Shown: positions 33,103 to 61,400, counted from the first letter of the stretch. The stretch is 64,000 nt of DNA from Selaginella moellendorffii (GCF_000143415.4 NW_003314266.1:1076463-1140462), one strand, 5' to 3'. The notes: generated by a model from the letters alone, not told the origin. Program-made: numbers and translations.

Positions 33103-35345
33103 TTAGAGGTCGATCTCGTCAATGCCCAGCATTCTTGGGCCCGGGATGGTTTTTCCAATGGCTTTGCCGCAGAGAATAACGTTTTGCGGGATCCATGTCT
33201 CAGTTCTCGTGGAGTTCTCAGGATTAAACACGCGGGCATAGCCTTCCTGGCCAAGGTACTGGCGTCTCAAGCACTGGGACCGGATGTTCCACATCCCTAC
33301 GTTGTCTACCGAGAAGAGAATCGCCGTCCAGCCTCTCGGGTACACCTACAAGTTGATCAAAGTTGATAGTCAGCGAACAAAATTTCGTTTCTTTTAGTGT
33401 TTTTGGGTGATCGACCAACCTGTGTTGTGGAGCGTGAAACAGCGTCGACCAAGTTGTACTTGGATCGGCTGCTGGGCGACCATGTTTCGTTGAATCCAAA
33501 CCTGGAAGAGCAACCACAATGGATAAGTGATCCAATCCAATCGAGGTCGATCCATACCCGACCACCCAGAAGCTCATCCCGTCCAAATGCCACGACTGGA
33601 TCTCGTTCTCCGGGTTGACGAATACGAGCTCCACAAAGCTCTTGTAATCCAGCTCGAGAACCGACGTCTCCATCACCGGCGAGCCCACGGCACTGGTTCG
33701 CATCGATCCCCGCGTGAAAACTCCGTCGATATTGTAGAAATCCGCGAGCTTGAGCGGGGTATCGGGTGTGAGATACGACTGCCCGTTGATCGCGAACCGC
33801 GCCTGGTTGTTTAGAGTCACGGAGGAGCTCGAGAGCTGGATCACTCTCGTGATGGGAATTTGGCCATAGTGGTAAGATCCTTGCGGGTTGGGCCGCGCGG
33901 CACCGGTGGTCAAATTCCACCTTAAAGAAGAAAAAGTGTCAGTGGGCTCGGGCAAGTTCTCGGTCATACCGCGCGGCACTGCTCGGTCTGGCAAGACTGT
34001 ACCGCGCGGTACTACTTACTTGATAGATAACGCCTGGTTTAGCGAAAAGTTGACGTCCAAGGGATCCGGGCCAGCCGGGATGGTTCCAGATGCTGCAGTG
34101 TTGGAATTTTGGTAGTGAAGAATCGCGACGCCGTTGAGTGAGCCGGAGCTGAATTTGGTGCTTGCGACAATGTAGTAGTCCGCGGGGCTCTGATCCATAG
34201 TGACGAGCACCGAGTAGGATTGCCCGAGATGGATGTCGAGCGAATCGACGCATGTCTTGGCGGTGTAGGAGCCCTCCGTTTCCACCACGCAGAGCTTGTG
34301 GGACTGGATCCGGACGTTGAGCGATTGGGCGGTTCCAACGTTTGAGATACGGAAGCGGTAGATCTTCCCTGCGAGATTGGAAGTGCCCAAGTTGATCGAT
34401 CGAGAAGTTTTTCGCAGGATCGAGTGGGAGTGATGCTTACCAGATTCGACAGTGAACTTCTCAAAGTTGGCATTGCTACCACCCGCAATGTATGGTGCCT
34501 TGCCATTCATAAGAACAACGTTTGGTCTTCCAATACCTTGGCTCTTATCCAGTCGTGATCGGCTCGACTGTTTAATCACACAAAGATTTGTCCACCAATC
34601 TTGATGTGAGATCGTTGCAACAAGAAAAAGAAAGAAAAAAAGAACGCACGCGTTCTTCCACTGACCCGATAGTCTCGAAGCTGCCAATCACCGGCCAAAA
34701 GCGTGAAATCGTCCGCGGGCGGTAGGAAAGGAACGGCAATCACTACGCGATTGGCGATCTGGATTCCACCATAGCCTCCCGCGGCCTTGTGGAAATTGAT
34801 GGAAGGATAGTAGAAGAAGGTCCCGATTTGATCCTTGACTTGGAAATTATACTGCCACGACTGGCCGGGCAAGATCGGGCAATTCGTTCCCGAGACGCCG
34901 TCTTGCCAGGATGATCGCCGCTGCTGGATCCCATTCCTGGATCATGGATCACGAGATTGGAAATGGATTGATGGAAACAAAACCGAAGTGATCATACCAG
35001 TGAAAGAGCAGGGGCTCGTCGAGGCGATTCGTCACGTTGATGTGGAGATTGTTGTTCGTGGTGGTCTTGATCGTGGGTCCTGGAAATTGGTTGTTGATCG
35101 CGATCACCTGGGAAGAACAATGTGAGATTTGAGACCCCAAAGAAACAGAGCATAGCAAATAGTGTGTGGTGTATGCGTGTGATGATTGATTGATTGATCG
35201 ATCTTACTCTTTGTGTGGTGTCCAGCAGTGGCAAATTCTGAAATGTGACTACCCAGTCGAGGAACTGATCTGGATCCGCTGCCTGTGCCGTCGATGCTAG
35301 TGCAAGAACTGCGAGAATCGCGAGGAATTTGGCGATGACGGCCAT
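33103..35345 (-). CDS. SKS: SKU5-similar (SKS) monocopper oxidase-like protein, multi-exon
   Basis: Signal peptide, INNQFPGP, SSWQDGVSGTNCPI, KDQIGTFFYYPS, WNLTTGAARPNPQGSYHYG, DNVGMWNIRS. Confidence 0.94.
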
Positions 35346-36061
35346 GTTTGTCGTCGTGAGGAACAGAGCGCTCTGTTTGAAGAAATGGCGGATCAAATTG
35401 CAGAATTCGAGCGCCTTTCCTATCAGAGCTGTTGAATTTCGCGGCCAAAGATCAAAGACGATGGTGACCGTGGAGTTCCTCTGGCGATTTATAGCTGAAT
35501 TTGCTGAGAGAAGGAGAATTTCAAAAGAAGATGAAGCTTCAAAGCAAGATCGTGCGACTCAAGTTCCGCAATGAGCTGCGTCCAGCGCACATGAACTGAT
35601 GGAGCGCCCAAAACAAAGTCGACGATTCAAGCCGAAGATTCTTGGCAGTAAAAACCGGAATTGATGATAAAAAACACCTCACAACTAGCACCAAAATTCA
35701 TGAAAATTCCGCGCTTAGCCGCAAAGCCAGTTGATCGATCAAGTTACCGATCGACCTAGCTTGCAATTCCGGTGCGAGCGCGTGAGGTTTACTTGCAGCT
35801 CCGCGCCCGCTGCTTTGCACAGCAATTCCACGCGTCCTCTAGAACACACGCAGCGGGCGTGCGTGGGGGCTAGCGGCCGTTGGATGCACTAATCCGCCGG
35901 CCACGAATACATAGCGTGGCGATATCGGCACTGTTGGATGTTAACGCGTTGGACGGACAGTAGGCAAAAGAATAAATAGCCATGGCCACTGTTGCGATTG
36001 TGTCTATATGTTGTTTCTTTCTCAAGATGTTGCGTAAAGTAACGTGCATTGGATGAATGGA

Positions 36062-36366: not shown

Positions 36367-39300
36367 ATGGCGAGGCCAATCTGGTGGAAGGGCGATGAGG
36401 CGGTCACTCTGGATCAATCGCCCTCGCAGAGATCGTCCTACTATGGGGAGGAGGACGAGAACTACGATTTTAGCTTCCAGAGTAGCTTTCAGGCATCGCC
36501 CATGGCTAGAACGATCCATGCGGCCTCTTCGCCAATGGGCAATGCCGGCTTCAGTCCCTCGCAGCTGGGCAATGGTCCGGATCGCGTGTTCGTGGTTCCT
36601 GTCCGGGGATCCGAGACGCCAATCACCAGGTCCAAGATTCCTCCTCCTCCGCGCGGCCGGATGGGCAGCACCACGCCCGAAATCGAGCGCCGGCTTGCCA
36701 ATGCCGAGGCCGGCACCGTCCAGGGCGCTGCGCTGGAGATGTATCGGGTGCTCAAGAAGAATGGATTGGCCGCCCAGGCGGAGAAGGCGATCAAGCGGCT
36801 CAACAGTGGCATTAGCGGCGCGGCGGCGGAGGAATCCCTGCTGGGGATGGAATTCATCCTCAAGGATGGGATCGTGAGCTTCCTCAGGGAGCTCTCCAAG
36901 CTCGCGCCTCCAGTTCCTCAGCAGGTAAATCGATCGCTCGCGAAAATATTTTTAGGGTTCTTCATTTTCCCGTTGTCTACAGGTAGTGAGGTTTTCTGGC
37001 GTGCGCCTCAGCGTCTCGCAAGAACAGGCGCTAGGGTATGAGACATTCGGCGGCAAGCTGCTGGGATGCTTCTTGGGGCCGCTGCGCAATCTACTGCTGG
37101 ACAGGAAGACGATCAAGAGGAAGATCGAGGTGCTCAAGGATCTGGATGGATTTATCATGCCCGGCAGCACTACGCTGCTCTTGGGGCCTCCCGGGAGTGG
37201 GAAAAGCTCGTTGCTCAAGGTATTTCTTCAGCCGCATTCATGTGTTTGCTTGGGTAGAATGTTCTTCTTTGGCGTTTTTTTCCTGGAATCCGTGATGGCC
37301 GTATTCTCATGGTCTTGTTTCCTTCTTCGTTCAAGTTCTTAGATTGTTCCACCGCAAGGTTCTTCATTTGTCGTCTGGGATCTTTCTCTTTTAGTTTTTG
37401 TTTTTTGGTAATCAGCTTTCGACTTTTTCCAGGTGCTCGCCGGGCGATGTGAATCCAACAAAACCACTAAACTACAAGGAATAGTTTCTTACAATGACCG
37501 ACTAGCTTCCGAGGTCGTCCTTACTCGACTCATTGCTTATGTCAATGGACAAGTGAACAGGTATTAAAAGCTTGTAAATCTTCCAGCTCCAGGTACTAAC
37601 ATTGAGCGTTTCTTCAAGGCATCTGCCGTTTCTAACAGTTCGCGAGACGCTAGAGTTTGCTGGGGATTGCACGCAAGGGGTCCGACCAAAGAACTTCAGT
37701 CCCAGCATGCGGAGGTACTTTGCCCAAGCTCTAGTGCAAGGGCAGGATCCATACCTGGAGTATGTTCTTCATGTTCTGGGGCTCAAGGCCGTGGAAGATA
37801 AGCTCGTTGGAATCGGCCAAGACGGTCTAAGTGAAACAAACAGGCACAGACTTACAAGTGCTGAGCTAGCAATCGGGACTTACGCAGTAATGATCTATGA
37901 CCAGCCTTGCTACGAGCAGGACTCGCAGGCAACGTATGATCTCGTCTTCACCTTGCGTGCGATAAGCCGCATACAACGGTCTTCTGCGGTGATGTCGCTG
38001 GTTCAAGTATCTCCAGAAGTTTTCGAGCTTTTTGACCGGGTGATAGTCTTGGGAGATGGACAGATACTTTACCAGGGACCACGACAAGACGTCTTGGATT
38101 ACTTCTCTGTACTGGGGTATGTTCTATAGCTTGGCTTTCGAGTTTATCTTAACATGGGATTTTTTTCTCGCTATGCAGATTTTCGAAACCGTCTCATGTT
38201 GACACAGCTGCATTCTTGCAAGACATTGGAGCAGGAGAAGGCGGTCAATACGTAAAAGGAAACCGGCAACTATATGGGATTGAAGAGCTCGTCGAGGCTT
38301 ACAAATCCTCAGACTTGTACAAAGACATCGTCCGGATAGTGTCTAGTGACGATGTTGCGTTTACGTACTGGGTGGAGCATGAGCCTAGCATTGGTTTGTC
38401 AGTGCGTAAATCCTCAAACGGTGCAGGTAAAGTGTTTGGAAGTGTTTTATTTGTGTTTTAACCAGCCTTGTACATTCATTGCAGAGGTGGTAGTAAGTAG
38501 ACTATCCACTAAAGTCGACCAAGCTCAAGGAATTGAGAGTACTGGGCATATCCAAGAAGGTGACATTGTCACTGGAATTTCTCTGAGGAACGGAAGGATG
38601 CAGTATATTGCAGTAGGATCGAAGATAACCCGGAAGAGCTATGCTGATGATATATCCAAGGTTTTGGAAGGGGCTAGAGGACACGTCCGACTCCAAGTAG
38701 AGCGAAGAGCAACAGAGCAGGAAGTCGAGAGCTCACAACCAGCGTTTGTGCAAACCTGGTGGGAGTCGACAAAAACAGTCACCAAGCGTCAGCTACGATT
38801 TGCAACTCGTCTCAAGATACTTGTTATCTTGCGTCTCATTCAAGTTGGTATCGACTGTTCCTTTCTTCATTCATGCATGATAAGTTTTACAGGTTGTGAT
38901 CTTGGGGATTTTCGGGGGAGCTATATTCTATAGCTTCGGTGGATCTCTTGATCCGGGAGAGATGAACATTGTTCGAGCGATCGGCTTCGTTTCTACTTTC
39001 AGTATTATGCTTGTCAACGTTGTTCAACTTCCGGTGCACATGATTCAGCGGCCGGTTTTTTACAAGCACAGAGCGCAGCGGTTTTTCAGAGTTTCCTCGT
39101 ATTTAGCAGCTCAGAGCATCGTCAACCTTCCACAGTCTATTATGGAGGCAAGGCGCCCATTGCATTTTACTTGTGGATTCTGACCTGGGATTTGTTGTGG
39201 CAGGCCCTTCTGTACAGCATTCCAGTGTATTTTCTTGCAAGACTTTCACTGGAAGAAGCTGGACTTCATTACATTCAGTTCTTTTGGCTATTAGCGTTAG

Positions 39301-41867
39301 TGGCATACATGGGGTCTTTTCTTGTCATTTTTCTGAGTACAATTACTCCAGTTCTCGAAGCTGGGAACGCTTTAGCAGGTTTGTTTTACATTTTTCTTAT
39401 ATTTGGTCTAACTCGGGATCGTGTGTCAGGTTTGGTGGTTTCTCTCGGTTTATTGTTTTCCGGATTCGTTATCTTTCCGAGCTTGACTCCAAGCTACTGG
39501 AAGTGGATGCTTTCGGCCAATCCGCTCCGTTGGGGAAATGTTATATTCTGCATGGCCGAGTTCCTCAATCGCTACCATGAATCTTGCCAAGACTTTCAGC
39601 AACTTCTGTTTTGCCGGAAATATCCAGATCTACCAGTTGGCCGGGCGTACCTCGAGTTTTTCCAGCTTGTTTCGGAGAGAAAATGGATGGCAATATCCTT
39701 CGCAATTATTGCTGCTTCGGTTCTCATTCTGGCGCTCGCTTCTTACTTGGGACTCAGCAAAGTCGTCTTTTCGGAAGTAAGTCCTTCCTTGCCAAGCGAG
39801 CCTGCAAGGAGTTCTTACAAGCAACCGGAGGACAAGCAGAAAGATATCTCTTGGGACGGACTATCCAGAATAACCGAGATGAGCAACTTGCAAACCAAGA
39901 CAGTGTGGGAGAAGAATGGTAGCACCCATGACGACGAAGAGCTTGGCCTTGGGCTTGAACTGCGGGGAACAGGTCACCAGTGGGAGAATTCGCACATACC
40001 CGTGAAAGCAGCCACGTTATCATTCCACCAAGTGAGTTTCTCTGTAAAAGCCGAGGAGAAGATAGTGCTGGACAGGGTCTCGGGATTCGCAAAGCCAGGG
40101 ACAATGCTTGCAATTATAGGGAGCATGGGCTCAGGGAAGTCCACTCTTTTAAGAGTTCTCGCAGGACGAACTCTGCCATCGTCAAGTGGGGAACTTATCT
40201 CGGGTGAAGTGCTGGTGAACGGATTCAATCTGAGTAGCAACACCTTCCGGCGGCTGTCTGGTTTCGTGGAGCGAGTGGACGCTCATCAGCCATTCTTGAC
40301 AGTGAAGGAGTCACTCGATTTCAGTGCCGGTCTTCGTTTTGGAGGCAGCACAACCCCCGGCCGCCGGGCCTTTCACGTAGAGCTCGTCCTGGAACTTATG
40401 GGCCTCGTCGGCGTCAAAGACCAGCTAGTGGGATCTCTCAAGTTTTCAAACGGGAAGATCTTTGAGCTCGCCAAGAAGCTGACCATCGCTGTGGAGCTTG
40501 CAGCAAATCCCAGCATGATTTTTCTCGAGGACCCGACGTCCGATCTCGACAGCGTCGCCACCAGGAACATCCTGTTCGCCATCCAAACGGTTGCAGCATC
40601 CGGCCGCACTGTTATCAGCACGATCCAGCAGCCGAGCGCTAGAGTTCTCAGTGCCTTCAACAACGTTCTTATTATGAGACCCGGTGGGGAGCAAGTTTAC
40701 TTTGGTCCCGTCGGCTGGAACTGTGGCCAGCTTCTGGAATACTTCACGACGATGTCGAGCGCTCCAAAGTACGAGCAGAGCCAGAACCCGGTGACTTACA
40801 TGTTCGATATCATCCGAAAGGACGAGCAAAACCTCGGCCTTGTCTATCGAGCGAGTTCTCTGGGAAGCTCCAACGCCGAAGAACTCAAGAAACTCCGGAA
40901 ACAGTACCGGAAGAACTCGTTCTGGCCGGCGCTGGATTCGACTTACGCCGCTCCTTACTCCAAGCAGGCCTGGTTGGTCTTCCTGAGAACACAGAGGTTC
41001 CTCTACCGCAACGTCCAGTACACGTTTGGACGGCTCTCCGGGTCGATCGCTCTCGGCCTTTTGCTCGGCTCGGTCTACTACAAGATCGCCACCAACGATA
41101 CGTTCTCGGTCACGTCCCGGTCGCTTTTCATCTACATCCAGGTGATGCTGCTGGGTGTGATCATCGCCAACAACGTCGTCCCCCAGCTTGGAACGGACAG
41201 GTTGGTCTACCACAGGGAACAGCGAGCAGCGATGTACGCTCCAATCTTCTATCCGGTGTCTTGGGCGATCGCGGAGATCCCATACCTGTTCATCGCGACG
41301 CTGGTGTTCGTGGGGATCTCAAACGGGCTGGCAGCGATCGCGACGCAGAGCGTGAGCAGCTTCGTCACGTACTGGCTGTGCCTCTTCGTCTTCACCACCA
41401 CCGTGATGTACTTCGGTATGTTCATCACCATCGCCACCCCGGTTCCAGTGCTGGCGGCGTTCGTGGTGTCCATCACGAACTCCATCTGGGTCTCGGCCTC
41501 CGGCGTGATCGTCCCAAAGGCCAAGATGGGATTTTGCGAGTGGGTCTTCTGGGCGAATCCATTCCAGTACGTGACGCACGCGCTGACGAGCGTGAGCTTC
41601 TTCTGCGACACCGCGAGCGCGGCGTGCGCGAGCTGCCGGGTGGGCGATGCGAATTCGTGCGCGGGATGCCACTGCCCGCGGCTGCTCAACGCCGAGAGCT
41701 CCGATCCGGGGAGCTTGCCGGTGTTCGTGTGGGATCGATTGAGCTCGCAGCGATCGCTGGAGGTGGAGAGGGTCTCGCTGGATTTCGTCGCTCTGGGCGG
41801 GATGAGCGTCCTCTTCGCGCTGCTTTCTTTCCTCGCCTTCGTGTGGATGAAGCACAACAGAGGATGA
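36367..41867 (+). CDS. ABCG: Full-size ABCG (PDR-type) transporter, atypical (PDZ-like insert, degenerate NBD motifs), multi-exon
   Basis: NBD1-TMD1-NBD2-TMD2 order: [70 protein letters not shown]. Introns restore the frame, including a probable GC-AG intron at 39148-39203. Confidence 0.93.
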
Positions 41868-42916
41868 AGAAGAAGCGCAAAATCAACGGTCCAGATGAGC
41901 TCTCATTTTTTAATTCAACGGCCTCGATGAAACGGGCAAACGTGCCCACCGTTGTGGCATATTCGCCGAATCTCCAACAGGGTTAGGGTTTATGGCAAGC
42001 GGCATTGTTTTGTGCGTGATCAACCGGTCGTCCAGCGCGGATCGTGTGCGCGGCGCCGCCGAGTAGCAGCTAGATCGCGCACTCTCACAGCAGCGCCGAA
42101 TCTTTCTTCCTTTTTTCTATTCCCTCTGATCAATCGCCGCCGCGGCGCTTATCTTGCTAATAATCTCGCTTTGCGCGCCGCGGATTCCACATCAAGATCG
42201 CGTGCGGTGCCGCTGTCCAGCCAATTCATCCAGCACTTCTCTCCCTTTTGTCCGGGCTCTCTTGGTTCGATCGATCATCCAGTTCCAGGTAGATTCCTTG
42301 TGCGAGGGCTTCCAATGCGAGCGCCGGCCATTCGCTAGGTACGATAGAGAGAAGAAATCGCGCGCACACAAGGGGGGGCCGGGCGATGATGGGAGTTATC
42401 ATAAAATTTGCAAAGCGGGTGTTCTACAGTGGAACAACGTGAATGGTATGGTCTGGCAAGTGGCAGTGATAGGATTTCTTCCAGAATGGGGCTCGGGGGG
42501 TCTATGGCACCGCCAGGAGCTACGAGTAGCTCGAATTTTTTGTGACAGCGTGTGGGAACTACCTATGTAGCTATAGATTTCTCGCTACTGGCAGCCGGGA
42601 AGTAGCAGTAGCAGCACAGTGGTACAGACAGGCACAGGGAAAGGATGGTCCGTGTGAGCAGCAGCGATGGATGATTCACTCCCCGACAAGCACGCCATTC
42701 TTAATTGCTGATGCTGCTGCTACAGCTCCGGTGAGCATTTCGTAAGCATTCCATCAGAGACCCTCGTGGATGGAAGAAATGGGATGGGGCTTTCGCCAGG
42801 AAAATTCCGGTTTTGATGACGATGGCAGCGAGAAGTTTGTCATGGGGTCTCCGTGGTCGCGCGAGGTTTCCTAGAGTAGCTTCGAGGTAGTGTAGAGGGC
42901 TTTGGTGCCTGGGAAG

Positions 42917-45793
42917 ATGCCCTTCCCATGGAGCAAATCTTCGAGGAAATCGTCGTCCAATGCTTCCGGTAAGGATAAGGCTGACAACAGCAAGCTTTAC
43001 TCTCTCGGGAAGAAGGGTCCGCGGTTGTCAGGCGAGGATGACGGGTCTTCGAGGGGTTCCAGGAGTAGTTATGATTCTTCGGCCAGGGTGGTAGCGGCGG
43101 ATGCTCCTACATTCTCGCCTTCGTCTGCCGGAATTCGAAGCCCGCTCTTTCCCGAGCCGCAGGCATTCAAGGGACAGCCTCTTCCTTTGCCGGAGAGTAC
43201 TACCAAGATTCAGCTTTGCAATGGAACTCTTCCGCTGCCGACGTATGACCAAGTCGAGTTTAAGCACGAGGTTGCCGAATTGGACGGGACGACTTCGGGA
43301 TATGGTTCTGGTTCTATCTCCAGTGGAAGCTCCACAAGCAGTGGGGAAGCAGCGGAGGCTTGGCTTGGAAGTTCCAATCGCCAGCAAACCGATCAAAATG
43401 GACACGCAAACTCCTTGTAAGCTTTTACTTTATGTTTTTAACTTTCGCGAGAAGTGCTTGCTCACCTGGTTTCTTTCTTTTTTCTTTCAGCTCACTTCAG
43501 AAAAACCAAAACAGAGCTGGAAGAAATCCACACCAGAAAGAGGCGGTTCCGAAGACGGTACCTCCAGGAAATAAGACGAGCTCCGTCTCCCCATTGCGAG
43601 CTCGTGCTGCGGCGGCAAAACAAGGCATGCATTTACATCTACCGGCACGTAGCGCGCCAACCAGTCTCATCTCCAGTCCTTCTCACAGTCCAAGACGTTT
43701 AAGTTCGTCGGAGCAACAGGCTTTGTTCCAGAACCACAGTGCTGTGACGAACTCCACAAACCAGGGACGAAACAGTCCAGAAAAATCTCCTCTTGCAAGT
43801 CCGATACGAGGCGGTTCGAGGATTCAAAGTGGTGCTGTCTCTCCCCTGCACCATTCAAGTTCCAGAGGTACAGACTCGCCTAGTGTCGGGCATCGGCTCC
43901 CTCCGCCACCGGCATTTACAAACTCGACAGTAAATTCTCCAGCGTCATCTACATTTCCTCTCGGTTCACCGCCTGGCATGCCTTCGCACAGTCCGATCAG
44001 GTGGCAAAAAGGAAACCTTCTTGGTGTTGGCTCCTTTGGACGAGTGTACAAAGGCTTTAGGTATGCTTCTGATATTCTCGGCCTACTCCACGAGCTGATG
44101 GTTTGTTTTTTCTTTGTTTGCAGTGATAGTGGTACCTTTTGTGCAATGAAAGAAGTCCTCGTTGTGGATGATCCTAAGTCTATAGAATCTGTAAAACAGC
44201 TAATGCAGGTATGCTGCCGTTCTCATTGCACGTTCCTGTCACTGACTGGTGTTTCAGGAAATAAATATGCTAAGTAGTTTAAGACATCCTAACATTGTTC
44301 AATACCTTGGCTCAGAAATGGTAAGGTTAAGGTATCTCTTAACTAGATGTCTCATTTCTCCTTTCTTGCTGCCTGCAGCTGGACGATAGTTTGTATATTT
44401 ATTTGGAGTTCGTTTCCGGAGGCTCGATACACAAGGTGCTCCAGGAATATGGTGCTTTCAAAGAGCCCGTCATTCGTAGCTATACGCAGCAAATCCTATC
44501 TGGACTCCAATACTTGCACAGTATGAACAAAGTTCACCGGTTCGTTGACTCTGTACTCTTGCGAGCTTCTATTAACAGCGCCTTTATTACAGAGACATCA
44601 AAGGTGCGAACATTCTCGTTGACACTAATGGTGAAGTCAAGCTAGCGGATTTTGGAATGGCCAAGCATGTAAGTAGCAAGCTGTGGTTTTTCTTTTTTAC
44701 TTATCCATCCACGCTTCAGATATCTTCTAGTTCACTTGTGCTATCTTTTAAAGGAAGTCCCTACTGGATGGCTCCTGAGGTATGTCCACGTTTTCTTTCT
44801 TCTAATACTTCTATGACACCGTCACACGGCTACTCCTTTTTAGGTTTTCAAGAGTAATGCGCAAAGCTATCCAGTGGATATCTGGAGTCTAGGATGTACA
44901 ATCATTGAAATGGCAACTGGAAAACCACCATGGAGCCAGTACGAGGGGGTATGTATTCTTTTGTAGTTTCTGTGCGTGCTCACTTACTTGTACACAGGTT
45001 GCAGCCATGTTCAAGATTGGAAACAGTAAGGAGACTCCTACAATACCGGACACCTTATCGCCAGTGGCGAAGGAGTTTATCAGGTTGTGCTTACAGCGAA
45101 ATCCCGACGATCGTCCAACAGCTTCTCAACTATTAGAGCACCCCTTTGTCAAGTTTTTGCACGATGAACATCTTCCGGATGGCCTTCCACCTCTGTCGCC
45201 AACATTTCGCTCAGTGGTACGTGATATTCTTTGTTTTCCATTCTTTTGTTTCTTTTGGATGATGTTGAGTGATCAACCTGCATGATCATCCAGGTTGCGA
45301 ATTTAAGCCACGATAGAGGGGGACAGTATCATCCGCGGTAATGTTTTTTAAGCACAGAAACGATACGCTGACGATTGTTTCTCGCTTTTGCTTTTGTAGA
45401 GATCTCATGTCTCCTGTTAGCAGCAATTCGGCCTACACGAGATCAATCTATTCCAGCTATGGAGGTCTCACACCAATTATCACGTCTGGAACTTCCACAC
45501 CCCAAACCGAGGAAGCTCCAGCCGGGTTTGCGAAGGACAGATATACCATGGCTTCAAGAGTGAACGGAATGCACATAAGAAACGAGCCAAGATTTACGGC
45601 GACTGCTGTTTCGTCACCAGGGAGTAGAAGTCCAAGGGCTGCTCAAAGGAGCGAGTTCGTGTGGAATCCACCGGTACAGCTCACTCCGGATGCCAGTCCA
45701 AGGCGTATGTCCAGCGATATCTTGAGTACAAACTCTAGATTCTATGCGAATTCTCTTCTCGGTAAGCAAGCTCTTCCTTTTTCCTTGCTTTGA
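42917..45793 (+). CDS. YDA: MAP kinase kinase kinase, YODA/MAPKKK-alpha-like, multi-exon
   Basis: [86 protein letters not shown]. Confidence 0.9.
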
Positions 45794-57849: not shown

Positions 57850-59960
57850 AACCAGAGCTACTTCAAAGAGCTCATATTCTTGAAAAAACCTGGCTATAGA
57901 AATGAAATATAAAGTATTATGAACCCCAATATAGATCAAACATTGAAACATCGATGACCTAATCAGAAAATGTATTTTATCCTATTGACTTGGTGTAGTA
58001 TCATAACTATTAAGGCTGCACTGTGTTCTTTCTATAGCTATTTTCTTCTATGTTCATGTGTTTATTATTTGTGTGTCATTTGTAAGTTTTGATAGTGAAT
58101 ATAACTAGAATATGCTTGAATATTCTAGGATATTCAAATATCTAATGGTTGTTATTTATTTAGATTAATCTTGTATTTATAATTTATAAATATGTTTCTA
58201 ATGTATAAACTTTCCAAAACACTTCCTAGTATAGTTTAGTTTATTCTACCATCTACTGGTTGATATTCAATAAGATTAATCTTGTGTTTATAAATTATAA
58301 GCATGTTTGTAATTTTTGATTAATTAATTTATTAAATAAGAATAACATTACTATTAAGAAAACCAAGTGTTGCTACATGCAACATGCAGCAAATTTTTTT
58401 AAAAAAAAGTTTTATCCCATTAAATCATCTTTAATTACTATTTAACATATTTTGATTCCTTGCTAGTATTTAAATATGCATGCTAGAAAAATATATTTAC
58501 AATATAAATAAATAAGTATATATACTATCTAGTGGTGTAAGATCTAAAGAGAGACATACACACACTTATATATATTTTCTTTCTTAAATAGTCACTAATT
58601 ATAGTATTATAGCATATGGACCATCCACTTGGGGCTAAATCATTCTTATATATGACAAAAGGTCTAAACCCCAATTAATGTATTTATTTTTATATCTAAA
58701 ACACTCACACTGGTAGAGGTAAAAGGTATTATAATTTATTTCTTGAAGGCAAAGCTTTTTAGTAGTGTTTTACTCTAGTGTTCAGGATTATTTTTATTCT
58801 TTTTAAAATCTAAATCTGTATTAACTTTTTGCAAAATCTAGAATTCTAGCTATTATTATATTTAGTTTTGATTTTCATTTTAAATCTTCATTACATTCCT
58901 TTCTTCCACCATACCATGCTGTCACTGATTAAAGAGTATATCACTTGAAGTTGCTAATGTTATTTTATTGGATCAAACTTTGGTGTTGTGATGTATGATT
59001 ATGTTGGCATTGCACCCATCCTTCATGTATTACTATTTCTAACTTTTGTGAGACATGATTACACAAATTTTTTTGTTCTCAGTGTTTTGCCATCTATTGT
59101 TGATATAAAGCATGACTATCACATTAATTGAAAAATTATGGATGATGCAATTTAGTTTTTGGAAAATGTTCAAAGATCAAATTTATAAAAAGATGATATA
59201 TATGAGCTCGAGTGGATGGATTGTGATGATGAGCTTGATTTATATAGAAATAATTTTGGAGACTAAATAGAAATTTCATGAGGTATATATTAATCCTTCA
59301 ATTTGCCATTTGATCATTTCTTTTTACCTTTTAATCTTTCCCAAACTTTTTATATCCAAACCACTTTCTTGTATTTCTAGCATTTTTCCTTATTTGTAGT
59401 GTTTTTGTCCTTTGGCATATTGATTATTTATGACTTTTATAATTGTTATTCTTAACTTAGTATTCCTCCTCATACTAATCTTGATATTAAGTATGTGCAT
59501 GAAATTGAAAATTTTACTTTTGTTTCGTTAACAAAGTCTTTGATTAGTTCTAGTGTTAAATATTCACCTATTTCAAAAATTGAGTTACTTTGACTAGAGT
59601 TTTGGGTTGAATGTATATCCCTACTTATAAGTGTCATAAAGAATCTTTATTTTACTATTGTTATTAAAGAATTTATGTGTTCCTTTGAGATTATGGACAT
59701 TTATATTAATTTTCTCATTTCGAAGTGTTGAATTATGTGTTGAATAAGTTGAGCACTGTGAATCTTTTGATTATATTATAATGGCTGAAGTATTTTATAA
59801 TAAATCCTAAACTTTGAGTATATATATTTTTTATTTTCCTATTTCCACATTGATAATTACTGAAGATTCCTTTATTAATCTTTTTTTATCCATTTTTTTT
59901 CTTCCACTCCTCAATTTTTCTTGTTTTCTCCTCTTTGCCCTCTTGCATCCATATAAAAAT
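57850..59960. other. Very AT-rich, ORF-free block, probably a decayed transposable element
   Basis: Abrupt composition change; no ORF >60 aa in 2.1 kb; no termini recognised. Confidence 0.45.
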
Positions 59961-59989
59961 TAATAACACTGAAGCAACTCTATTTTAAA

Positions 59990-61400
59990 TTGGTTTGTAC
60001 TTTCAAAAAAGAGTCAACCAAGGATGCCATAGACATTTTGAGTCCGGTAAAAGTTCGTGGTGGTAATTCACGACTGCATCGCACAAATGATGCCCCATGG
60101 AGCAGCTTGCAAATCGACGTTCTGGCAAACATGCTGGCTGCTTCTATACGTGGTGGCGATGCTTTAGCTGCATGGCGTGCAGCTTCATCCACTTATCACA
60201 CCACATGCACAAATTTGCCTTGCCACTGCTTTGCCAACAGCTGCGGCCAAACTCCCAGGTGGGACACGGTCTTCAGTTCCAGCGCTCCCTTTCCTCAGGT
60301 AACTTGACGCTTTACGTTTGATCTTCTTCTTGACTGACTCAGTTTTTTGCAGGTAGCATTCGTTTCCTCAGGAAAGCTCGCAAATGGACTTTATCAAACG
60401 GAATCCCAGGAAGAAGGATTGGTGGAGAGGGAGCAGCTCATCCGATCCTTATATCTACACGCCGTTTTCAGAGAGCCGAAAAAGATTCAGCTCATCTGGA
60501 TAGTTGAAGTTCTTGTTGAAGTTGCAAATCCTTTGTGCCTTCGAAATCCACGTTGAGAGTATATGCATCAGCCGGGGGAATTCGAGGCATTTCCACAGTC
60601 CTTTGTCTTACCTCCGAATGGATCGAAAGTTTTGTCACTCGCTGGAAGGCCACGTTCGACCGGGTCACTGACAGTACGGGGATACTTTGTGAACTACAAC
60701 GGCGTTGTTACCGAGCACTGTTTTGGGGGCACAAATGCTGAGAGAGGCTTGTTCCTGGAAAATCCATTCCGAAGCTCGGGCAGAAGTGGGTTAAAGCTCC
60801 GAAACAAGCCTCTCCCGGACATCAAAGTTATCCCTCCACTGCCGTCTCTAGTAGTGGACGTTGAGAGGGCGTGGTAGTTATATACGAGGGGGAGGTTCGA
60901 AACATGACGATCGAGCTTTGCAACATTGGTTCCGTGCCAGTTATAGAGGCGAACATATCAATGGTGGCAAGGCGCCGCGAGCGCAGAGGAAGAGAAAGTC
61001 ACTTCACTAAATCTTGGACAAGGAAGCTTTTCTGCAAGTCCATTATGCAGGTACATAGCCAGTTTATCTTGTGGAACTAACCAAAGGACCTTTTCACAGG
61101 TTCTCCAACACGGACGAAGAACTCTCTCTCGGTAGGCGGCTGAGTAGTCGTTTGAGGCTTCAAGTTCTTCAAGGCCTTCGTCTTGTGAATTCACGGCTGC
61201 TGTCGATGGAGATTCATCTCCAACTAAGCAGTACTCTCCGCAAGGCCGAAGCAAACGCCACACTGAGAATGGATCCTTACAGGGGAACCTCCAAGTTCTC
61301 GAGCTAGAGCTGTGGAATGGAACGGATGCTTTCTCCACCACGAAAGCTGTACTCGAGCTTGACTTCATGGCAACAAGCTCCGGTCCCTCGTCCGGAAGTG
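59990..61400 (+). pseudogene. TRS120: TRAPP II subunit TRS120/TRAPPC9 internal fragment
   Basis: WSSLQIDVL..IRGGDALAAW, LIWIVEVLVEVANPL, FEAFPQSFVLPPNGSKVLSLAG, PFRSSG..IKVIPPLPSLV, IYEGEVR, GRRL..LQVLQGL; many frameshifts, introns retained. Confidence 0.85.

Follow-up and report, generated by a model that had tools for sequence, protein, structure and literature searches.

The closest known counterparts of SELMODRAFT_406260, a gene at positions 36367-41867 (plus strand) of a 64,000-nucleotide stretch of the Selaginella moellendorffii genome (GCF_000143415.4 NW_003314266.1:1076463-1140462; the whole stretch is called the window below), are the full-size ABCG proteins of the PDR type. ATP is handled by these proteins at two composite sites to which both nucleotide-binding domains (NBDs) contribute. 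In canonical PDRs the working site is site 2, built from the Walker A, Q-loop, Walker B and H-loop of NBD2 together with the signature of NBD1, and site 1 is composed of the NBD1 Walker A and Walker B with the NBD2 signature. Hydrolysis by ABC enzymes needs the catalytic glutamate, the H-loop histidine, the Q-loop glutamine and the Ser-Gly-Gly of the signature, and ABC exporters with one degenerate site are common. The canonical plant full-size ABCG/PDR proteins (clusters I-V, of the NpPDR1 and AtABCG36/40 types; our stored proteins P0162-P0172) share with the Selaginella protein the duplicated order of NBD and transmembrane domain (TMD), (NBD-TMD)x2, the Pfam families ABC_tran and ABC2_membrane, and an NBD1 without the H-loop histidine, and are some 26-36% identical to the products of its larger exons. 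They differ from it in carrying ISGGQ, DE, Q and HQPS at site 2, in having no PDZ insert, in conserving NBD2 most strongly, and in forming a separate clade.

Among solved structures, the best matches in both sequence and fold are yeast Pdr5 and Candida Cdr1 (PDB 7P03-7P06, 9IUK). These likewise possess one degenerate site, consisting of the NBD1 Walker A, Walker B and H-loop with the NBD2 signature. Their site 2, however, is fully canonical and drives transport, whereas in the Selaginella protein site 2 is the more damaged and site 1, judged by its residues, would be dead for hydrolysis too. The Walker B glutamate-to-glutamine change that occurs naturally in NBD1 of the plant group containing the Selaginella protein (subclade A, below) has been engineered into ABCG2, ABCG1 and AtABCG25, and the titles of the structure entries describe the resulting proteins as ATP/Mg-bound trapped states. 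Unlike the natural protein, these are laboratory mutants of homodimers, and their sites are otherwise canonical. A more distant parallel is offered by CFTR/ABCC7 and SUR1/2, which use nucleotide for gating or regulation and not for pumping, with a degenerate site 1 that holds ATP (PMC7756269). These proteins belong to another subfamily with a type I fold, keep one hydrolytic site and contain no internal PDZ domain, and their likeness to the Selaginella protein is one of analogy only.

Within plants, Cho et al. 2020 (PMC8359288) reported early-diverging 'V1-Type' full-size ABCGs from Chara, Klebsormidium, Physcomitrella, Sphagnum, Selaginella and Amborella and 'in no other angiosperm', in a paper that does not discuss their motifs or an extra domain. 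From its taxon pattern and tree position, the PDZ-bearing lineage described here is probably this V1-Type, although our homology searches, unlike that account, find it retained in many angiosperms beyond Amborella. A paper on cucumber ABCGs covers clusters I-V only, and no paper that connects a PDZ domain, or degeneracy of both sites, with full-size ABCGs was found in the searchable literature.

We propose, with a probability of roughly 0.6, that the gene is functional, is kept by selection, and belongs to an ancient streptophyte clade of full-size, PDZ-bearing ABCGs whose members, on the evidence of their sequences, would no longer be ATP-hydrolysing pumps.

Nucleotide sites and their distribution across the clade

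The exon products of the gene contain Pfam ABC_tran and ABC2_membrane domains in both halves, giving the NBD-TMD-NBD-TMD order of full-size ABCG/PDR-type proteins, and the gene is collinear with Cdr1/Pdr5. The exon products of the window gave no match to PF08370, the plant PDR-associated domain, at E<=0.01; it is a precomputed Pfam hit in orthologues P0001, P0135 and P0145. The catalytic motifs are placed as follows.

37184-37210, plus strand: NBD1 Walker A, intact
37535-37558, plus strand: NBD1 Q-loop region, AYVNGQVN, with one extra residue relative to canonical PDRs
37824-37853, plus strand: NBD1 signature; SGGQ lost, ET in place of GG
37884-37907, plus strand: NBD1 Walker B, MIYDQP; catalytic Glu replaced by Gln, Asp kept
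exon 4, plus strand: NBD1 D-loop region, CYEQDS
37989-38012, plus strand: NBD1 H-loop region, VMSLVQVS, without the H-loop His
40119-40145, plus strand: NBD2 Walker A, GSMGSGKST, intact
40260-40286, plus strand: NBD2 Q-loop, GFVERVDAH; Gln replaced by Arg
40443-40481, plus strand: NBD2 signature region, unrecognisable as a signature
40515-40550, plus strand: NBD2 Walker B, ED (LED), where Cdr1/Pdr5 have FLDEPTSGLD
40617-40637, plus strand: NBD2 H-loop, STIQQPS, with QQ; TIQQPS against TIHQPS in NBD2 of Cdr1/Pdr5

Site 2 retains the Walker A lysine alone, and the hallmark of one hydrolysis-competent composite site is missing from the protein. Site 1 keeps its Walker A and the Walker B aspartate, with glutamine as the catalytic residue, no H-loop histidine and an unrecognisable NBD2 signature. 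At the level of the aligned motifs, both sites are shown to be without the residues required for hydrolysis, and the putative nucleotide-binding residues of NBD1 to be preserved under selection. Every motif string quoted in an earlier, sequence-only reading of the window was found in the region given for it, and the canonical strings set beside them match eight plant PDRs, a Chlamydomonas PDR, four oomycete PDRs and NBD2 of Cdr1/Pdr5. That reading had described both composite sites as stripped of catalytic residues, with both Walker A motifs intact, and the motif alignment agrees. The alignment adds three points to that reading: the arginine in the NBD2 Q-loop, the extra residue in the NBD1 Q-loop, and the missing H-loop histidine of NBD1, the last being shared with canonical PDRs.

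To place these changes on a tree, motif states were compared over 42 and 39 aligned proteins, with relatives drawn from homology searches and an exhaustive representative search. The homology searches used the exon references and the annotated protein P0144, which lacks 31 residues of TMD1, with a 1564-aa orthologue as an additional query. Trees were built by IQ-TREE quick searches with support from the Shimodaira-Hasegawa-like approximate likelihood-ratio test (SH-aLRT) only. The window protein falls inside subclade A (SH-aLRT 100), together with Calypogeia (a liverwort), a second Selaginella paralogue, Adiantum, Cryptomeria, Amborella and many other angiosperms, including Magnolia, Tasmannia, Dioscorea, grasses, Hevea, Eucalyptus, Camellia and Vitis. 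The sister of subclade A is a group formed by subclade B (MpABCG27, Riccia, Physcomitrium and Diphasiastrum), the alga Spirogloea and one Logan protein. Subclade A and this sister group make up a single clade of 19 rows (SH-aLRT 100), referred to here as the degenerate clade. Outside it, in the same lineage (SH-aLRT 100), stand proteins of Chlorokybus (P0190), Closterium (P0192) and Cymbomonas (P0193) and a second protein of Riccia fluitans (P0188). These four carry the same insert, ending in ..RLQLER, and differ in having lost none of the Walker, Q-loop, signature or H-loop residues at either NBD. The lineage as a whole is recovered apart from the canonical land-plant PDRs, as a 23-row and as a 20-row clade (SH-aLRT 100 in each case). 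Orthologues from liverwort to angiosperms are 42-73% identical, and the lineage is absent from the listed matches for Arabidopsis, O. sativa, tomato and legumes.

All 19 rows of the degenerate clade, and none of the 20 others, have lost the first signature glycine of NBD1, which amounts to a single change on the tree. At these columns the canonical residues, G-G for the signature of NBD1 and K, Q, D, E and H for NBD2, are found in the four outer members of the lineage and in the 16 other outgroup rows. Because these residues are present in 20/20 outside rows and the window protein has only the lysine, the deviations of its motifs are not a matter of chance. Wherever a residue is present at the column, the NBD2 Q-loop glutamine is gone from every inner-clade row but one, with arginine or lysine in subclade A, and the canonical NBD2 H-loop histidine is retained in two rows of the 19, those of the Selaginella paralogue and the Logan protein. 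Spirogloea and its sister, the Logan protein, still have the catalytic glutamate of NBD1; all 20 aligned proteins of subclade A have glutamine instead, within an invariant YDQP, and those of subclade B have Gln, His, Ser or Asn. The Walker A lysine of NBD1, by comparison, is kept in 10/10 subclade A rows and 18/19 rows of the degenerate clade (tree table), and the motif reads GPPG[SC]GKS[ST] in nearly all of the 20 aligned subclade A proteins, with a one-residue gap in Magnolia.

The P-loop and Walker B of NBD2 vary much more. Its Walker A lysine has been lost about four separate times (Thr in Calypogeia, Arg in Adiantum, Asn in Amborella, and Thr or Ile in Dioscorea and grasses), and the motif is intact in the window protein, the Selaginella paralogue and Cryptomeria. 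As their Walker B pair, Calypogeia, Adiantum and Cryptomeria have DE, Amborella has DN, and most of the other angiosperms have EE, with ED in Linum; within Selaginella it is ED in the window and DD in the paralogue P0147, whose H-loop reads HH. The degenerate NBD2 signature, AKK[IL]T[IV]AVE, is itself conserved in most subclade A orthologues. When orthologues are aligned, as the sequence-only reading had proposed, the changes in the NBD1 signature, NBD1 Walker B, NBD2 Q-loop and NBD2 signature prove common to subclade A. Its claim for the NBD2 H-loop holds in so far as the change is conserved in the subclade, but fails for the Selaginella paralogue, which keeps the canonical histidine. As a conserved degeneracy the NBD2 Walker B has to be given up, ED being, Linum apart, peculiar to Selaginella, and DE surviving in Calypogeia, Adiantum and Cryptomeria. 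Overall, the degeneracy is shared from green algae to flowering plants, and is an old, selected feature and not decay.

Two further observations concern duplicate genes. The second subclade A paralogue of Selaginella (P0147 / P0012) lies on another scaffold and is faster-evolving (42-53% identical, end branch 0.94-0.98). In the liverwort Riccia fluitans a PDZ-bearing ABCG with canonical motifs (P0188) coexists with a degenerate copy from subclade B (P0152), a natural pairing through which putatively active and inactive forms could be compared within a single species.

Gene structure, splicing and selection

The locus is a single multi-exon gene of nine exons with a product of about 1631 aa, annotated publicly as a hypothetical protein (P0144, 1600 aa) to which all exons are 100% identical. 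Full-length plant relatives, including 1564-aa proteins, are collinear with the window from ~36.5 to 41.86 kb in tblastn comparisons. Its parts are listed below.

36367-36924, plus strand: exon 1, an N-terminal extension of 186 aa, matching P0144 residues 1-186 exactly
36925-36982, plus strand: intron 1, GT..AG, 58 nt, placed from the sequence and orthologue N-termini
36983-37219, plus strand: exon 2, holding the intact NBD1 Walker A
37433-37560, plus strand: exon 3, with the NBD1 Q-loop region
37619-38116, plus strand: exon 4, the NBD1 core with signature, Walker B, D-loop region and H-loop region
38179-38426, plus strand: exon 5, carrying the PDZ-fold insert jointly with exon 6
38485-38843, plus strand: exon 6, carrying the PDZ-fold insert jointly with exon 5
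38893-39147, plus strand: exon 7, start of TMD1; Pfam ABC2_membrane
39148-39203, plus strand: intron after exon 7, GC..AG, supported by contigs of four runs
39204-39378, plus strand: exon 8, TMD1
39379-39429, plus strand: intron after exon 8, GT..AG, 51 nt, in frame and outside the motifs
39430-41867, plus strand: exon 9, end of TMD1, linker, NBD2 and TMD2; the stop codon ends at 41867

Evidence for transcripts comes from assembled contigs representing several accessions or haplotypes. Four public runs, each from a different study (X1, X2, X6, X18), have contigs in which introns 2-8, seven of the eight, are removed; the excised parts measure 49-213 nt, six of them GT..AG and one GC..AG. The contigs show that the gene is transcribed and spliced, on the guess that the runs are of RNA. 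Codon arithmetic on the exon coordinates gives a reading frame that is open from 36983 to the stop ending at 41867, with no internal stop over the junctions. The earlier description of the gene as intact is upheld by this frame, by the splicing of seven introns in four runs and by the identity of the exons to the annotated protein.

Two introns have consequences for how the protein is read. The public annotation lacks the final 31 residues of exon 7, which are conserved (TMD1, ...SIME), because the GC..AG intron at 39148-39203 was missed. A long open reading frame, 39171-41867, runs in frame through the genuine 51-nt intron at 39379-39429, and a naive reading of it therefore puts 17 spurious residues into TMD1. 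At the 5' end, the product of exon 1 is 31-41% identical to the N-termini of orthologues, and none of the contigs in the four runs spans exon 1 or intron 1. Contigs of three runs begin at 36965, 36980 (with adapter sequence ahead) and 36996, that is, within or just past intron 1; these starts could represent an internal transcription start, or poor coverage of a GC-rich 5' exon.

The same contigs differ from the window at 35 single bases, 15 of them non-synonymous and 20 synonymous. Set against 3295 and 1040 sites of the two kinds respectively, these give a ratio of non-synonymous to synonymous differences per site (pN/pS) of 0.24 (binomial p = 2.7e-5), and the non-synonymous variants concentrate in the weakly conserved linker, codons 841-986. 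This shows purifying selection on the gene. Canonical orthologues combined with relaxed selection on this copy, the finding that the sequence-only reading had named as telling against it, are therefore not what is seen for the motif changes common to subclade A. In a between-species comparison synonymous sites would be saturated, since the nearest sequences are at most 56% identical. Between the Selaginella protein and its seed-plant orthologues, identity is 62% in NBD1, 56% in TMD2, 50% in NBD2, 48% in the PDZ domain, 47% in TMD1 and 18% in the linker. NBD1 leads NBD2 here, whereas the order is reversed in canonical PDRs (NBD2 75%, NBD1 67%, from a baseline that mixes paralogues). Thus constraint has moved from NBD2 to NBD1, and the membrane domains are about as constrained as in real pumps.

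The surroundings of the gene can be described briefly. Upstream, at ~34000-35400 on the minus strand, pieces of open reading frame resemble an SKU5-like or multicopper-oxidase-like protein (..FPGPTIKTTTNNNLHINVTNRLDEPLLFHW..) and are probably a neighbouring gene. Downstream, at ~42900-44650 on the plus strand, lies a neighbour resembling a protein kinase of the MAPKKK type, with a Ser-rich N-terminus and its kinase motifs in separate exons. Further away, positions 58001-60000 form a 2-kb stretch of 26% G+C, compared with 45-58% in its surroundings.

The PDZ-fold insert

Between NBD1 and TMD1 the protein carries an additional segment, encoded by exons 5-6.

38381-38705, plus strand: PDZ-fold insert between NBD1 and TMD1

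In every member of the wider lineage NBD1 is followed by such a segment, some 100 aa long, which is absent from canonical plant, oomycete and fungal PDRs. No Pfam PDZ match was returned for the window's exon products. An AlphaFold2 model of P0144 residues 500-668, made with 26 aligned homologues, has a mean confidence score (pLDDT) of 75 and the strand and helix order of a PDZ domain, a fold of six strands and two helices. When the model was compared with the PDB by Foldseek, nearly all of the top 50 entries were annotated as PDZ domains or as complexes containing one (probability 0.77-1.00, mostly >=0.97; E 9e-4 to 2e-2), with template-modelling (TM) scores by target of 0.20-0.60, and ~0.5-0.6 for entries consisting of a single PDZ domain. 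The position of the GLGF-like carboxylate-binding loop reads IGLS in the window, and GLGL in the consensus and most orthologues. Modelled as one unit, NBD1 and the insert reach a pLDDT of 83 and a predicted TM score (pTM) of 0.83, and the modelled NBD1 folds as an ABCG NBD, with Pdr5 as the top match and ABCG2 and ABCG25 also recovered. According to these models the insert is a PDZ domain by fold. A conserved C-terminal PDZ ligand in cis is unsupported, the tails of the proteins sharing ..KHN.. and varying in their last residues.

The same insert occurs in the canonical-motif proteins of Chlorokybus, Closterium and Cymbomonas and in one Riccia paralogue, and consequently argues neither for nor against catalysis. 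We rejected the proposition that it marks pseudo-transporter status, given its presence in relatives with every catalytic motif. The sequence-only reading was thus right about a PDZ-like fold, and its use of the insert as evidence for a pseudo-transporter falls away with the canonical-motif sister proteins; the role of 'sensor, receptor or scaffold' that it suggested is speculation.

Mechanism, rival explanations and significance

The motif states on the tree give a course of events. The PDZ insert arose first, in catalytically active ancestors, and this ancestral state, the insert with all motifs present, survives in Cymbomonas, Chlorokybus, Closterium and the Riccia paralogue. Site 2 was then inactivated, with the NBD1 signature glycines lost once and the NBD2 Q-loop glutamine and canonical H-loop histidine lost with them. 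Replacement of the NBD1 catalytic glutamate came later, after the loss of site 2, and the NBD2 P-loop and Walker B, now unconstrained, drifted. In the resulting protein, the P-loop of NBD1 may hold Mg-ATP stably, as in the engineered glutamate-to-glutamine mutants, with the nucleotide serving as a structural or regulatory ligand and undergoing little or no hydrolysis. The conserved membrane domains would then serve something other than primary pumping, either as a nucleotide-gated facilitator or channel or as a regulatory or anchoring subunit, and the PDZ domain would be an older partner-binding module inherited from the active ancestors.

Several points weigh against the loss of hydrolysis or reduce the force of its support. 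Site 2 of the Selaginella protein keeps its Walker A, and has an aspartate at the catalytic position, so that slow hydrolysis is conceivable. Calypogeia, Adiantum and Cryptomeria keep DE in NBD2, and Cryptomeria also Walker A, and some site-2 function may persist in them. Most of subclade A, the window protein excepted, has a histidine one position past the canonical H-loop histidine (xHP[SN]), which could take over the role of the latter. Furthermore, the variants behind pN/pS were drawn from contigs assembled from several accessions or haplotypes, the canonical baseline for domain identity mixes paralogues, and the tree support is SH-aLRT from quick searches.

The first alternative to consider is that primary active transport persists in this protein through a slow or non-canonical cycle, ATP being split at site 2 with the help of the NBD2 Walker A, a Walker B Glu or Asp and the shifted histidine found in most orthologues, or at site 1 despite its glutamine. 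The conservation of this histidine in most of subclade A would fit such a cycle, as would the NBD2 Walker A left intact in the window protein, the Selaginella paralogue and Cryptomeria, the DE pair of Calypogeia, Adiantum and Cryptomeria, and a TMD conservation near canonical levels; Walker B glutamate mutants of ABCB1 have residual ATPase activity (reviewed in PMC7756269). Nonetheless, we consider a slow pump unlikely, though less so for members that keep the NBD2 Walker A and DE or have the shifted histidine. No member retains the NBD1 signature glycines needed to complete site 2, subclade A has lost the NBD2 Q-loop glutamine throughout, and the NBD2 Walker A lysine has disappeared independently about four times, as expected of an unused site. 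NBD2 is also the least conserved catalytic domain, and the window protein itself, with QQ, lacks both candidate histidines.

A second alternative places the energy or activity elsewhere, in a hetero-oligomer with a competent ABC partner or with a protein recruited through the PDZ domain. The conserved PDZ fold with its GLGF-like loop is compatible with recruitment of this kind, and S. moellendorffii does possess a second subclade A paralogue, P0147, but this paralogue is degenerate as well. The solved full-size ABCGs, Pdr5 and Cdr1, are moreover self-contained, and the PDZ domain is present in canonical relatives too, which together make such an arrangement quite improbable. Finally, an incipient or unprocessed pseudogene with decaying NBD motifs, for which one could cite the many altered catalytic residues and an exon 1 covered by no RNA contig, is scarcely credible and was rejected in view of a 1631-codon frame open over eight introns, correct splicing in four runs, a pN/pS of 0.24 (p = 2.7e-5), orthologues kept across land plants and degenerate motifs that are themselves conserved (YDQP invariant; AKK[IL]T[IV]AVE in most orthologues).

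Returning to the preferred interpretation, that of a maintained clade of ABCGs no longer hydrolysing ATP, its members could be ATP-occupied membrane proteins that, instead of pumping, form a conduit gated by nucleotide or serve as a receptor or regulator scaffolded through the PDZ domain, and would then be the first ABCG 'pseudo-transporter' family. We offer this more specific assignment tentatively, and hold it to be somewhat doubtful as it stands.

It is unusual for a membrane ABC protein to be degenerate at both sites and yet to be conserved by purifying selection all the way from liverworts to angiosperms. For annotation, the implication is that crop and tree genes automatically named 'ABCG36/37/43, PDR1-like' should not be presumed to encode drug or hormone pumps. 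If the absence of the lineage from Arabidopsis, rice, tomato and legumes is real, this may explain why the family has been overlooked. More generally, the lineage constitutes a graded natural series, from canonical PDZ-bearing algal forms through a Spirogloea-type state in which site 2 is lost to subclades A and B in which both sites are lost, and this series could reveal the role of the ABCG fold once ATP hydrolysis stops. Should the pseudo-transporter reading be true, the family would represent a natural experiment, open to comparison with surviving active ancestors that carry the same PDZ domain.

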